From positions 621,061-685,060 of the forward strand of contig RDEW01000011.1 of assembly GCA_011109175.1 (NCBI GenBank): 64,000 bases of DNA, given 5' to 3'. This DNA is from Dicyema japonicum. Its lineage: Eukaryota > Animalia > Dicyemida. The notes under the pieces are model-generated. The model saw nothing but the letters and a program-made list of their open reading frames with translations, ran no database searches and had not been told where the DNA came from. The translations under genes were made by a program, and so were the position numbers. Positions 9,549-64,000 of the stretch are shown here, in pieces (positions within the stretch are counted from its first letter, which is position 1; every line of letters starts with the position of its first letter).

Positions 9549-9735
9549 CACCTAAATGACACGTGAGTGACTTGTAACAACAACTAAATGTTCCTCAGCC
9601 ACACGAATGTCACGTATACCGACTTGTGTACGATAACTATATGTTCCACATGCACCTAAATGACACGTGGGTGACTTGTAAACAACAATTTAATGTTCCA
9701 TATAGACACAAATGTCACGTGGGTGACTTGGAATT
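9549..9735. repeat. Degenerate tandem repeat, unit about 52 bp, about 3.5 copies
   Basis: Units of the form CACCTAAATGACACGTG(A/G)GTGACTTGTAA..ATGTTCC start near 9549, 9600, 9653 and 9706. Confidence 0.8.
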
Positions 9736-10685: not shown

Positions 10686-11050
<365 letters not shown>

Positions 11051-11644
11051 TATGGGTGATTTTAAATAAATTTAGCGTAAAATGGTTTAAAAACACAATT
11101 TAATGTTCGTGACGTAGTTTGTTGAACAATTACTTAGAGATCGTCGTAATTGCTAAATCATTCAAAGTAACTGAATTGGCTAATGCGATGCACGTACTCT
11201 TCGTATGGTGGGCAATAAAAATTTATGTCCTCATCCTCAACCCACGAGAGCTACAACCCATTCCTATGTTTTTGTGAAGAAGGCGAATGCTTCCTTATTT
11301 CTGTCCCGTAAGTTCTTTCTTCCAATTAATTTCCTTGTAAACAAGAGCACTTCAGGACAACGGTGGGTACAATGGAGGACCACAGAGATGGCCTGATAAT
11401 AGCGGGAACTGGTCACCTAACTATTTGAATATAGTTTGCATCTTACTCAGTGACTCTGAGTTATGAATATGAACCATCAAGGAAGTCTGGAAAGACACCT
11501 CAAAGTGAGAGATACGCTAAATCGTATTTGGGATAAAAGTAGTGTTTGACCAATATTTTTGACCTTCATTATCTAGCACAGTTGTGAATCTTTGTTACTA
11601 TTACTAGAATAGAGATCCTTGATCTTTTTCATTAACCAAACACG

Positions 11645-11905: not shown

Positions 11906-12870
11906 ATCTCAAATTAACTAATTGACGTGGGAAATAAACTAAAATTTCTTGGCAAATAATCAATAATTAGAGTTACAGAATAGAGGTTTTGATATAACCG
12001 TGACATTCCAGCGTGACGTCATCGAAGTACTCCCGTCTGTTCTGGGCATCTAACAAATACATGTAAATTTTGTTTTTCTCGTGTTCATTGTTAATTATGT
12101 AAGTTCCGAATCCGTACTTCCCCACATTATTAGTGGTTGGTCCCATGAAGACGTCCAAGTCATTGTCTCCCTTTATAATGTCTCCAATCGCTGTCCATAA
12201 ATGACTGGAACTTGGCAGTCATGGAAAACTCTGGAAAGTTTGAGTGGATACTTATGGTCTCGCAAGGAAGACTTTTATTAACATTTGAGCTTTTAGCTTT
12301 AACCACGATGAAAGGCAGAACAAGAAAGAAGACAATCACTAAACATTATCAGCACATTCTAACTTGTTAAAAGAACCCCCAGCTTTACCTGGTTGGTTGT
12401 AGAACTGTTCCTTATTTGGTTGAATCTCTCCTTTGAAATGTTTACAATTCGGCGACAGAACACTTTGGTAGGACAATCAAGGGTCTCTTCTGGCTGTATC
12501 ATTTGGATATTTTAGTCGACGATTATCTAAATATAAGAAATTTGTTTCCTTTTTAAAACATTTGGACATTCGCATAAAATGTTCTAAACTCGTAATTTTA
12601 ATTTCCAAATACAGCTAATTTTATTATTAGCACCATACATCCCATCATCCTAGCTTCTGACAGATGATCTCCTGAGTTCTCCCAATTTTTAGTGGGCAAA
12701 TCCTTCACGCATCAGACACTTCCTTTGTTCAGAACTTTGGTTTATGATTTCCCTCGAGTTCGTCTATGGTCACGAGAAGGAAAATGTAGGCTTTCATCCA
12801 CCATGAAGCAAAGTAGGTATTCAGTGGGTATATGTCGCCACCTCCACCGCCGACCAACTAACCACTAATT

Positions 12871-14082
12871 CAGTGGTTCCCAACCTTTTTGAGAGCACGG
12901 AACCCTATCGACATTTTCATTTTATACGGAACTTTATATAGTTTTTAACAAATATCATTTTTACTAATATAAAAAAATAAAATGCTAGTTAGTGAGACGG
13001 TTGAGGCTGATGTCTCTTTCATAGCTCTTTAATATTTGGCCTTGTCCTTGACAGGGATAAACGCAGGTCTTCTTCCACATACAGTAGGTTCGCGCGTTTT
13101 TTATCCTTTATATTTTTTAATGCAGAAAATCCACTTTCAAAGAGATAAGTCGTTGAAAACTGGACCGAAACTCCCCAAGCTTTGTTTGCCAGAATAAGAT
13201 ATTCTTTTTTTACAATCAGCCAAAACGAATCAATATCAAAGTGTAAATATTCCATTTTTTACGTTTTGTCACCTGAATCAAACGCAAGTTCTTCTTCCTC
13301 TTTTAATGAATATTTTAGAAGCACGTGGACTTAAATTGTGTTTTTAAACCATTTTACGCTAAATTTATTTAAAATCACCTATAATGGCTAGTGGGGGACC
13401 AGTTTTTGTGATCTGCTATATTTGTGGGAGAAAGTTATTTCATAATCAGCAAAGGATTCCTCACCCAATCATAGAGTTCACTGATTTGGGTGGAAAATAA
13501 TTATTCGTACATGTAAATAGTGACTCCAAATTATCTACAGTTTGTGGAACAATTTCTTTAAAATTTCTTTCTTGCACATGAGCGATCTAGCATGCAGTGC
13601 TTTTTCGTTTATTTTGAATTTTTGTAAAACGGGATGCGTGAACTTTATTCTGGTCCAATTTCCGCATAAATTTTTTGAAAGTACAGAGTGCTTGGTGGAG
13701 AAATGGCGTCTAATTTTCGTTAGAGCCATAGCACTATTCGCTAGTTTTTCACCGCAAACAACACAAAGTGGTAAAGTGCAATCCATGTCCATAGTCCATG
13801 TAAAAACAAAGGCAATATAACTTTCTCGATACGATCGAACTTTAAGATATGCACTGTCACAAGACTCCATTTAGACACCCGCAAATTAAATTAATTCGTT
13901 TTGAAAAATCATTTTTTTGAAAATAGAATTGGAATAGCCATACTCCGAGGGAACTCGTTCGCAATCCACGCAGCAGGCTTCCTCAACTGACATTTGTTTA
14001 ATTGTTAAAAAAATTTATTTTGTTCAAAAAAAAAGTATAAAAAAATTTTTGAACTTTGCGGAACCCAGGTTGAAAAACACTG
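12871..14082 (-). mobile_element. Non-autonomous Buster-type hAT element (1212 bp), internally deleted transposase, carrying a 122-nt captured insert
   Basis: TIRs CAGTGGTTCCCAACC and GGTTGAAAAACACTG. TSD CACTAATT at 12863-12870 and 14083-14090 has the central TA typical of Buster. Remnants: CVVCGEKLANSAM..RRHFSTKH, YDWVRNPF, LKEEEEL, FSTTYLFESGFS. Confidence 0.92.
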
Positions 14083-14461
14083 CACTAATTGGTCTGATAG
14101 TTACCGATTTTTAATTTTTACAAAAACATCGTGGAAGTCTCTAACATCTCCTTTTTACGACAGGACTACCTCCATGCTTATATGGGTGTTGATCGTTTTC
14201 TCGAGTGCACGTGGTAATAAAGAAAATTCTAATTACCACAAATTTAAAAATTCTTCCCCTTCAATTGAGAATTTAATACTTGTTTAAACTCCCAATTCGC
14301 CCAACTTCGCCAATAATTCGAATAAAGTCAAGACTTAGATCCAGTCCATTAGTGGGTGGCGATCAAAAATTCGCGATTACAAGACTACTAGGACATGAGT
14401 CTTTAATAACTCCAGATATAGTGGAAAGAGGTTGAGTAAATTAACATCTAATTAAAGTATA

Positions 14462-14787: not shown

Positions 14788-15540
14788 TCAAGCACGTGGA
14801 TCATTTAACCGATTTAGTAAATCCAACAATAATTGGGGGGATGGTCCTCTCAGTCTTCCCTTCACATTTGCGCCGCACTCCGTCAACTCTCTCTCTGAAC
14901 TTCTCCCCACAGCGACAAAGTGAACTCCTTTCAATCTCCCACTACAAGCTCTTACACCAGACCCACTGAAGAAAACAACAAATGTCGGGACCTCCACTTG
15001 CAAATAGTGTCCGAATCTCGCAACTTCTCCCTCATCAGGTACAGTAGCATAAACGACACTTTTGTGTATTTCAAAACCGGCCAAACTTAGGGTACCAAAT
15101 ATTGAAGAGCTGGCCACGTTACTACACGGGTACAACAGCTTCGAAGGGACAGGATGAGTCTCAACCACCTTTCTGGCCAAATCTGTCTCAGTGGAAGTAT
15201 CAGGGATGACGAGGTTTTTGAAGGAATTCAAAGAGGCAACAGTTTTGCTTCCAACACCAAAAATGGTTTTATTCTCCCAAATTTGGAAAGTCTTTTCATT
15301 CAATGAATCGAGGAATATTTTAGAAGCACGTGGACTGGTAAGAATTATTCCTGAATGACTTGATTACTTCCAAATTCTACCGTCAAGTGTTTCGTCGTTG
15401 AGATTGCTAGTGAAGTCTGTGAGATTAGTTGTATCAAATTTGATGACATTGAAAACCCTAACTGTGTATTTCGACGACAAAATACTAACGTAAGGGTCGT
15501 CTTCGTCATAACTCTTACAGAGTACAACAGTTGCACACAT
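14788..15540 (-). CDS. UROS: Uroporphyrinogen-III synthase (240 aa); one 30-nt intron (15351-15380)
   Basis: DDPYV..GIILTSPRAS..WENKTIFGVGSKT..LLYPCSN..FFSGSGV..FVAVG..GPSPQLL align in order with the human UROS motifs LIFTSPRA, VYVVGNAT, LLFPCGN, FFSPSG, FAAIG and SPTPQAL. Confidence 0.9.
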
Positions 15541-15639: not shown

Positions 15640-18580
15640 AGTAAAGCATATTTAAAACTGCCATCCATCCAAAGTGGACCCCGCCGACATTATCGACGTT
15701 GCGTTGCCTCTCACGATTGCAACAGAGATCAACTGGAGTAGCCACCGGGTCTCACGTGCGTCATGGCTTTTTAGTGTAGCTAAGCGTCCAAGTTTCTTTA
15801 GGAAGCGAAGCGATTTTCCACTTATTCCTCCAGTTGTCTCGACCACTATCGGATAAAACGCGAATCGGTCGCGTAGCGCTTCGTACTTCTTCTCCTTTGC
15901 CATCATCGTTTTTTCCGCGGAATACAGTGTGTCTACCGCGCTCCCGACAATGTTGGACGTGCAAAGCGTGTCGACACAAGTAGCGTCCCAGACCAAAGGT
16001 TTCCCCTCTTCGAATGGGAAAATTGTGATCCCGTCGGGACGTTTTCCGTCTCCTCTGTCCAGACCAACAGGTTCTAGTATGGCTGGGTATCCCGCAGACT
16101 CCAGGGCTCGCTTGACAATTCCGTTGATCGCCTTGTGTCTTGGGAATCGTCCTGCACTCCTTCGACAAGAGAGGGCATGGAGTCCATAACAATCGACGGT
16201 TGCGCCACATCGGCATTTGTGGGTCCGGCAAATCTCCAGTCCAAGTCTGGTGGAGATGCCGATGCGGACAGTATCGTCGTCAAGATGGGTCCCGACACTG
16301 CCAACTGGGAGTGCATTGATCCATGCGCCACTCGATTCGCATCTTCCAGTGACTAGACATGCACGTCTGTGTTGGTTTGATTGGTTCAGAAGCCTCTCAT
16401 ATTTATCCTCGCAGATGGTCCTGTAACGATCTTTCTGCTCAGGCATCATCCCCTTCAAATGCTCCATCTCTGTGATTTCAGATGATTCTGTTTGGAGTTG
16501 GAGAATCATCCTGACCAGCAGTCGGCTGGAGCCCAAAGAGGATAGATAAGCAGGGCAAGCCAGATCTTTCGTTGAAGGGATTCCCAGTCCGCCCAGGCTA
16601 ACGGGTAGGGTCGCTTGGTCCCACCCTTGGTCGTCAAATTTCACATTTGTGATACGTTCAATAGTACTCCGGAAGAGAAAATCGATAGCATCGAGCTGTT
16701 ACATTTTCAAGTGCTGATAAGGCGTTTCTCAGGAGGAATAGGGAGGTGTGTGCGTCCAGCATCTCCAGACGTCTGAATTTTGTTTTTAGTTGATGTTCTT
16801 TTGTTCTTAGAGTGTTACTGATTCCAGCATCAGTAAGAGGGCATCCAAGTATTTCCAGTTCTTCTGATTTGGTGTCTGTGGCTTTCAGAATGATCTTTCT
16901 GAACATACCAAGGATCAGATCCCATTCAGACTGTGGAAATCCAAAATTGGTTACTTCACACTTATTGGTGTTTAGAGTTAGGCATAGGGATTCCAATTGT
17001 ACTATCAGACTTTTCAAACAATCTAGTACATCCTTCGGATGGCCGCCCATGGTGCAATCATCCAAATACCATACTCTCAGAGGAGTGGAGCAGTATCCTG
17101 TGATACGGGCAATTCCCAGGCTGAACAAGGCGGGCCCCAGTGGGTCTCCTTGTTGGACTCCAGAAGACGAATGTAATATTGGCCATGTACCAGACTGGAT
17201 GGTTTTCCGTACGAGCTATGAATATAGCTGTACACTGATGTGAAGTATGTGAAGCAATCCTCCAGAATTGTATCACGTCGTATCGAGTTGAAGGCATTTT
17301 TAATGTCAATTTTGACGATTACGTGAGGAATGTTCACGTTCTTTTCGGTGAATGTTCGGACAGCATGAACTGCCGCTTCACAGCCGACCCCTATTTGGGT
17401 TGGTTGCAGCTGTGTTATCAGCGTAAGTAGGATTGCTCTGCATACAAGCTTTGATGCCAACCGACGGAAGACCATTCCGACTGCAATAGGGCGTATTCCA
17501 TCTCCCTTCTTGTTGAATGCGATTAACTTTGCGGAAAACATTACGTGTCGAATTGTTTCTGGTAGTGTCCCTGATAGCATCCTGTTCATTAGTTTGGTGA
17601 TAGCCAACACGAGCCGGACCCCAGAGTTGCCCGTGTTATGAGCAATGAGATCTTTGATGTGACCCGGACGGAGCCCATCTAGTCCTCCACTGCTACTCGG
17701 GACGAAAGAGAGGATACCATCTTTTACGTCCTCTTCAGAGACAAGCAGATTGGGTAATTGTCCTGGGCAAGGGGGAACCCGGTGGTCGTTGGGAAGACTT
17801 GGGTGTCGCTCAACAAGTGATGCGTAGGACTGTTCGGACGGCTCAATTATACATTGTTGATCTGCAAGGATCCTCACCGCAGCACGGATACCACCTTCCG
17901 AAAGTTTTCGACGGATCGCGCTTCTTAATCTCTGAGTGTCCGAGATAGTCGATGTTGGCTTCTCATGGTTTTGAAATTTGTAGGTGAGCTTTTCTGAGTT
18001 GCCAATAGGTTTTTGAGAAGAATGTGTGGACATTCTCCTTTACTAATGACGTAAGTGATTTCTCTCTTTCCCCTCCTATGGGGTATGCATAGTGTGAATG
18101 GAGCAAAGCAAAATAATCGTACCCAATCATCAGAGTCGTCCGAAGAAACTGCCCTTTCAATACACTCACATAGGCAGTCCGCGACAGATATACGGGCAGC
18201 TTTGGGGATCCTAATCAGGAGTCTTCGTGTGTGTGTCAGGTTGGAGATCAATTCAAGTATTTCCTGATGGTCTAGTGGAACATGTTCAGAAGGGTAGCGT
18301 AGGGAAGAGTTTGTCGTATTATCTGGTAGGAGACAAGATCGACAGTGCCAATCGGAAATGGCAGCCAGGGCTCTTTTAGTCATTCCGGCACAGGACATGT
18401 GGAAGCCATACGAACATGCTGTGCAATGGATCATCCGCTTTCTTTTGTTCATTATGTTGCACTTTGTGCAGATCTCATATTCTTTTACAGTTTTCTGCAT
18501 GTTCTTTTCTGATTTTCCTTTCTTATTCTCTTCTTATCCTCTTCTTTAGCAACACAACGAGAACAGACGACACAACGTGC
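15640..18580 (-). mobile_element. Near full-length CRE-clade (RLE) non-LTR retrotransposon: PHD - RT - CCHC/RLE, broken into four ORFs
   Basis: PHD in 17925-18500. RT GGLDGLRPGH..RPIAVG..DIKNAFN (17077-18033). WYLDD (16658-17128). [34 protein letters not shown] (15652-16644). Confidence 0.92.
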
Positions 18581-63200: not shown

Positions 63201-64000
63201 TACATATTTTATAGTTCATGCTTCCTAAGGGAAGCCAATCTACCAGAAATGCCCGTCTCTTAATAACTCACAATTACCACGTGTCTTATAATTAAATTAC
63301 TCATCTCTATTAGCATTAATTAGAATTTTTATTCAAATGTAAAAAAGGTTTTACTGTCATTCAAGTCCCCTAACGTCAAGCCCTACCCTTTGAACAACTT
63401 AATGTATGCTGAAATGTGAAGGGGTAAATTAAAATAATCCTATTTTAACCACATTAACCCAAAAAAGACCAAAAAAGGTATTTCGCGATGTTACGTTTAT
63501 ATTCGATTATAGTTCGTTACGTCGTCGCAACGAAATTTCGACAGTTTTAAATTTGCGCAAACCTGTCAGCCGCTTTTAGTGCCTGATAAAAACTAGAAGT
63601 AGTTAACTTTAGTGGTGAGGTTGTGAAGTCAATCTCCACGTGTTTAATCCACGTTTGGACTGTCAATGACAGAGGGATAAAAGACTGAAGAGTCACCACG
63701 TCAGTATTTGCCTCAATGCAGAGGATCAATCCGCTGCTATCAAGACAAGTCAAAGAAGGTTTTCTTTTTTTTCAATTCCTTCGCTCAAACTTTTGATCAA
63801 ACAGCATCATCCAATAGCATATCCTTCGTCGACCATCCCAATATATCAGTTCCCCGTGAGCCAGATGGCTATGGACAACTTACTCGTATAAGTCATCCAC
63901 TTTAACTTTGTTTTAGTGGTGCTTAAAGAACTTGCCCCCAATACCATCTCAGGTTATGGAAAAGGATNGATTTTTTGTTGCGCACTAGTTCTCTTAGGTA

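Follow-up and report, generated by a model that had tools for sequence, protein, structure and literature searches.

A patch copied from both neighbouring genes fills a small gap in an old hAT element of Dicyema japonicum

How did pieces of two different genes come to lie side by side inside a transposon that is located between these genes? The question is raised by a locus in the window, that is, the whole 64-kb stretch of Dicyema japonicum DNA that was analysed (G+C 39.8%), in which a hAT element occupies the spacer between the 3' end of a UROS gene and the 5' end of a ZNF474-like gene. An earlier sequence-only reading had proposed that the transposase remnant of this element is interrupted by an insert copied from both neighbouring genes. 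Capture of host gene fragments by DNA transposons is still debated, and most captured fragments are too old or too distant from their source to reveal the steps involved.

The element is a non-autonomous hAT element of 1,212 bp on the minus strand (12871-14082). Its termini are CAGTG, and the 8-bp duplication of its target is perfect. The 8-mer CACTAATT flanks it on both sides, at 12863-12870 on the left and at 14083-14090 on the right, as expected for the hAT superfamily, and the terminal inverted repeats (TIRs) are short, with CAGTGGTTCCCAACCT at 12871 against CAGTGTTTTTCAACCT (reverse complement) ending at 14082. The left arm (12871-13309, minus strand) consists of the TIR starting with CAGTGG and a remnant of the C-terminal part of the transposase. 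The right arm (13433-14082, minus strand) carries a remnant of the N-terminal zinc finger, a deletion junction at 13586 and the TIR ending with CACTG. The patch is thus located between intact TIRs, as had been proposed. Approximately 30 genomic copies match 12871-13309 and the sequence from 13433 onward with 84-90% identity, and coverage by the family falls to zero between 13309 and 13433. At least eight other family copies have matching 8-mers of their own, of the type nnnTAnnn, and the hAT repeat holding the patch site is present in about 1,000 copies in the genome.

The transposase remnant of the window gave no match in Pfam. An ORF of a sister copy, 78% identical to the window remnant, matched Dimer_Tnp_hAT with E=3.7e-4 (20.7 bits, below the cut-off of 21.4), and the ORF at 13535-13870 in the right arm showed a weak match to zf-C2H2_12. 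The remnant peptide given in the sequence-only reading is a frameshift-corrected translation, the reading frames of the copy itself being broken by stops and frameshifts. Longer hAT copies have an extra 750-1,100 nt at the position equivalent to 13586, while the junction at this position is common to copies on C157 (754458-754944) and C356 (894887-895386), so the window copy is a member of a non-autonomous subfamily of deletion derivatives, which was mobilised in its own right. An apparent open frame of 650 aa in a longer copy proved to be a run of 1,609 N (C312:1240410-1242018) and was discarded as evidence of an intact transposase. The host of the patch is an old, immobile, internally deleted hAT copy in the UROS/ZNF474-like spacer.

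The patch is made of two segments. Segment A (13308-13331, plus strand) is a copy of part of UROS exon 2 in the same orientation as its donor, with 24 of 24 nt identical to 15313-15336. Segment B (13331-13433, plus strand) is an inverted copy of the 5' end of the ZNF474-like gene; without gaps, its first 99 nt (13331-13429) match the reverse complement of 11005-11103 at 98 positions, the single mismatch being T against C at 13380. Neither match can be extended ungapped, and a repeat search found both independently. If a 1-nt gap is allowed, with one A skipped, segment B reaches 13433 and its donor becomes 11000-11103, a tract of 103 nt. The GAA at 13430-13432 is then templated, leaving zero untemplated filler bases. 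Segment B holds 53 nt of upstream sequence, an ATG at 13384 and 16 codons. Donor A (15313-15336, minus strand) comprises the codons SPRASKIF within UROS exon 2, on the right-hand side of the break at a distance of 2,004 bp. Donor B (11000-11103, minus strand), which lies ~2,230 bp to the left, belongs to the ZNF474-like C2HC zinc-finger gene and takes in its 5' end, including the ATG at 11050. The two identities and the donor distances of about 2 kb to either side were as claimed from the sequence alone, and the copying of the insert from both neighbouring genes is supported.

The sequence before the event can be read from the sister copies. All 27 other family copies spanning the site are without the insert and have 12 nt in its place. 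They read ...TTTTAATGA TAGCTCGTTTCC AGTTATTTC..., where TAGCTCGTTTCC represents these 12 nt, the codons GNEL on the minus strand. In the window copy TAGCTCGTTTCC is missing and the filler occupies its place between ...AATGA and AGTTATTTC. The event therefore combined a 12-nt deletion with a filler of ~125 nt, and the transposase remnant is not split exactly at one point, as had been thought, since the GNEL codons are missing there.

At the junctions, which are read from one assembly, adjacent parts overlap by GA between the left arm and segment A (13308-13309, 2 nt), by T between segments A and B (13331, 1 nt) and by A between segment B and the right arm (13433, 1 nt). Microhomologies had been reported at these junctions. 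They are present, but as GA, T and A, and overlaps of 2, 1 and 1 nt are at the level of random junctions (P(sum>=4)=0.19; P(all three >=1)=0.09). Overlaps of this kind are as frequent as expected by chance in AT-rich DNA, so they are compatible with switching guided by microhomology and do not prove it. The left arm ends with AATGA, and in the UROS donor this 5-mer is found again 6 nt upstream of the tract that was copied, the intervening 8 nt being bounded by a GAAT repeat. A 5-mer of this kind would recur within 10-15 nt by chance with a probability of about 0.02-0.03, and its presence is a hint that the end first annealed at AATGA and then slipped, which would yield the observed sequence.

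Both donors lie within genes. For spliced gene models, Pfam searches were made exon by exon. UROS exon 1 (15540-15381, minus strand) gave no Pfam match when searched singly, and exon 2 (15350-14788, minus strand), also searched singly, matched HEM4 with E=1.2e-22. Between them lies an intron of 30 nt with GT...AG ends (15380-15351, minus strand), and its splicing joins ...LDG to IILTSPRAS. The intron contains an in-frame TAA. Its length fits the ultra-short introns reported for Dicyema japonicum, in which the mean intron is 38 bp (PMC6736024). Segment A is antisense to the SPRASKIF codons, UROS lying on the minus strand. The possibility that segment A crosses an intron-exon boundary was ruled out, as the conserved motif IILTSPRAS runs through segment A and the intron is confined to 15351-15380. 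Segment B within the element points in the direction opposite to the ZNF474-like gene, which is on the minus strand. An RNA or cDNA template is not supported; segment A runs antisense to UROS and, with introns of 30 nt, there is no splice site within either tract. Just upstream of UROS, at 15652-17128 on the minus strand, there are long ORFs of a retroelement (330 and 156 aa), for which no Pfam match was found at E<=0.01.

The next question is whether the patched element has spread, and when the patch was made. The 99-nt segment occurs at exactly two places in the 67.5-Mb genome, the donor and the patch, and the junction of segments A and B occurs at one. Hence the segment does not represent a dispersed repeat, and no spread of the patched element has occurred. 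A dispersed-repeat origin of the 99-nt segment, by which the sequence-only reading would have failed, is ruled out by these two places. A mobilised capture was likewise rejected for this assembly on the basis of the unique junction and the 27 of 27 spanning copies without the insert. Compared with the majority consensus of its family, the element has 48 differences in 932 sites (5.15%), as against 1 substitution in 126 nt between the filler and its donors. Were the filler of the same age as the insertion, one substitution or fewer would be expected with P=0.011, a contrast that weakens to P=0.17 if half of the ~5% divergence represents subfamily differences. The divergence of the filler is far below that of the element, which indicates that the patch was made long after insertion. 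The claim of a local event after insertion of the element has accordingly stood, on both the 27 unfilled copies and the younger age of the filler, whereas the suggestion that the cassette might be mobilised met with no second copy in the genome. Its suggested production of small RNA is likewise not supported.

The class of event to which the patch belongs is already described for animal hAT elements in the survey of Tan et al. 2021 (Nat Commun; PMC8277862). Of the 370 animal Pack-TIRs of that survey, 208 are hAT elements. Nearly all are single-copy with donors mostly less than 5 kb away, and the medians are 2 bp for microhomology and 4.6% of the element for the gap. Capture follows insertion, and the authors give transposition-independent gap filling as its cause (PMC8277862). 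The window element resembles these single-copy Pack-TIRs in its hAT host, in the non-TE filler between two parts of one element, in its cis donors at less than 5 kb, its overlaps of 1-2 nt, its 12-nt gap, its single-copy state and its capture after insertion (PMC8277862). It has features of a Pack-TIR, in that non-TE sequence lies between two parts of one TIR element of which both termini are kept, an unambiguous, non-repeat parental copy exists elsewhere, and the cis donors are nearby, at 2,004 bp and ~2,230 bp. In contrast to these Pack-TIRs, its filler is chimeric, with one donor on each side and the two tracts in opposite orientations, and its host is a dicyemid, a group that the survey apparently did not sample (PMC8277862). 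The survey accepted internal sequences of >100 bp with one parental copy (PMC8277862). Set against a single-locus cut-off of >100 bp, the filler is 125 nt in total and is drawn from two loci (24 + 103 nt), the larger piece barely passing. Its pieces being at or below these cut-offs, events of this kind would be missed in the survey (PMC8277862).

Fillers have also been familiar for a long time in other hAT derivatives, the maize Ds elements described by Du et al. 2011 (PMC3260210). Like these, the window element is non-autonomous and has internal sequence replaced by foreign DNA, which in Ds occasionally consists of gene fragments. In Ds, however, fillers mostly replace large parts of the element and their sources are mostly untraceable (PMC3260210), in contrast to the 12 nt replaced here from two identified sources beside the element. 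The window element was compared with one further system. Plant Pack-MULEs carry gene fragments, often from several loci, between the TIRs of DNA transposons, and are commonly multicopy and mobilised. The window element shares with them the fragments of several loci between TIRs, but it is single-copy, lies beside its own donors and belongs to a different superfamily.

Taken together, it is considered highly probable that the patch is a single-copy Pack-TIR (Pack-hAT) with two donors, produced by break repair through serial template switching or gap filling, independently of transposition. An internal break would have arisen in the resident hAT element. One free 3' end would then have primed on UROS, copied 24 nt and dissociated, and the same 3' end would have re-primed on the 5' end of the ZNF474-like gene, copied 103 nt in inverted orientation and been released. 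The released end would finally have annealed to the other broken end of the element. A single nascent 3' end that switches serially would, we infer, be the most economical path, and one event or two successive events would leave sequences that look alike. Candidate pathways are gap filling of the SDSA type, extended alternative end joining and replicative switching.

The last of these pathways, taken by itself, is possible though rather doubtful as the source of the patch. In replication-based template switching (FoSTeS/MMBIR), a stalled or collapsed fork within the element would have switched to templates on both sides and returned. The location of both donors within 2.3 kb, one copied directly and one inverted, together with the tiny overlaps and the small net deletion, would suit this explanation, such features being typical of the class (discussed in PMC8277862). 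The product, however, would be the same as that of break-induced gap filling, and the two routes cannot be separated from the sequence alone.

Polymerase-theta end joining proper (TMEJ) was named as the agent in the sequence-only reading, and in this the reading went too far. Were the filler a templated insertion made by theta, the templated bases, the short junction overlaps, the presence of direct and inverted tracts together and the sign of re-priming in the AATGA upstream of donor A could all be accounted for, and in these respects the filler does resemble templated insertions (TINS; PMC7165422). Such insertions, however, are of 3-30 bp, are copied within tens of bp of the break and have primary tracts rarely >10 bp (Carvajal-Garcia et al. 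2020, PMC7165422), whereas the tracts of the window are 24 and 103 nt long with templates 2.0 and 2.2 kb away. The genome does provide this class of enzyme, encoding a family-A polymerase, with PF00476 above its cut-off on C223 (2122129-2125530, minus strand) in a gene interrupted by tiny introns. In searches against PDB, the last exon of this gene matched human Pol theta (3e-7) and one other exon gave no match. Taq Pol I nevertheless scored above Pol theta with the same last exon (2e-9), and the polymerase may be of the nu or Pol I type. End joining by theta is thus regarded as unlikely.

Still less probable is abortive gap repair after excision, in which the sister chromatid serves as template for refilling the gap but synthesis is interrupted and filler is left, as in maize Ds. 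This route is a known source of hAT derivatives with filler (PMC3260210), and the family does have mobilised deletion derivatives, those with the 13586 junction on C157 and C356. The deletions expected from it are large and biased to the ends (PMC8277862), in contrast to the loss of 12 nt from the middle of the element, and the filler is much younger than the element, a copy that is 5% off the consensus.

It appears very unlikely that the 125 nt were placed by the assembler, through gap closing or through merging of Illumina and PacBio data. The site lies in a repeat of ~1,000 copies, the assembly merged Illumina and PacBio data and was gap-closed and haplomerged, and the one substitution and one indel relative to the donors could be allelic in a sample with a heterozygosity of 1.24% (PMC6736024). 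Against such an origin, precisely 12 nt are exchanged for the patch while each arm stays in register with the family, the surroundings are free of Ns (the sole N of the window is at 63968), and the libraries were PCR-free, without whole-genome amplification (PMC6736024). An artefact would also conflict with the overlaps observed. Graph assemblers join at long shared words and not at overlaps of 1-2 nt, and this, with the exact 12-nt swap, makes an artefact unlikely.

The patch most likely has no function. A functional capture, whether as a new promoter with ATG, a 38-codon chimeric ORF, a hairpin RNA or an element now spreading the fragment, is hardly credible even though TIRs and duplication remain intact, the ATG at 13384 opens an ORF of 38 codons, an inverted repeat of 103-108 bp is formed with the ZNF474-like 5' end across a 2.2-kb spacer and some animal Pack-TIRs are transcribed (PMC8277862), because there is no second copy in the genome, the upstream sequence copied is 53 nt only and the ORF from 13384 runs into degenerate transposon sequence. 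The term promoter-plus-ATG cassette, used in the sequence-only reading, was overstated for the same 53 nt. The 103-bp inverted repeat could form a hairpin in a read-through transcript. By a more speculative scheme, to which little credence is given, the one repair event would have created a nascent multi-gene Pack-hAT, with ends that still look functional, before any transposition, and a hairpin from UROS read-through might feed small RNAs against the ZNF474-like gene.

The return to a probable Pack-hAT made by serial switching in an immobile element leaves the known picture unchanged and no function indicated. Its use lies elsewhere. Since the patch can be traced base by base to sources 2 kb off, all three junctions can be read and sister copies supply the sequence before the event, the locus is a good illustration of the gap-filling route. 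It also shows that there are two-donor events of roughly 100 bp which fall below the filters for size and for a single parent in the published survey (PMC8277862), so that surveys of this kind probably undercount them.

Flank-templated fillers were sought in ~35 other copies of the family, with 1.5-kb flanks, and no further case was found. The same survey revealed four other copy-specific holes, of which two were small and represented AT-rich local variation. The two large ones, 356 nt in L009 and 317 nt in L014, were nested high-copy short repeats. That in L009 (1978-2333) is a repeat of ~355 nt with at least 145 candidates at 92-97% identity, and that in L014 (2062-2378) is a repeat of ~306 nt with at least 1,813 candidates at 89-94% identity. 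Both resemble SINE- or MITE-like families.

The patch and its ZNF474-like donor differ in one further respect. As assembled, the gene has an extra A at ~11004/11005, and the frame starting at the ATG stops after 20 codons (with CYIC there). The rest of the finger, 16 residues that match positions 9-24 of Pfam zf-C2HC_2, is in the +1 frame. In the transposon copy, which is shorter by one A, ...CYICGRK can be read without a shift of frame, so that both halves of the finger are joined, and its short ORF matches positions 3-11 of the zf-C2HC_2 profile. Having one A fewer, the transposon copy preserves the in-frame state of the first zinc finger of the ZNF474-like gene, and the patch can be regarded as a small molecular fossil of it. 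Judged from the two sequences, the extra A of the gene would be one of three things, a later mutation, an allele or an assembly error. On the gene side, ~1.3-1.5 kb downstream of the ZNF474-like ATG, the region 9549-9733 consists of four tandem units of ~52 nt, each with a CACGTG-type motif (...AATGTCACGTGGGTGACTTG...).
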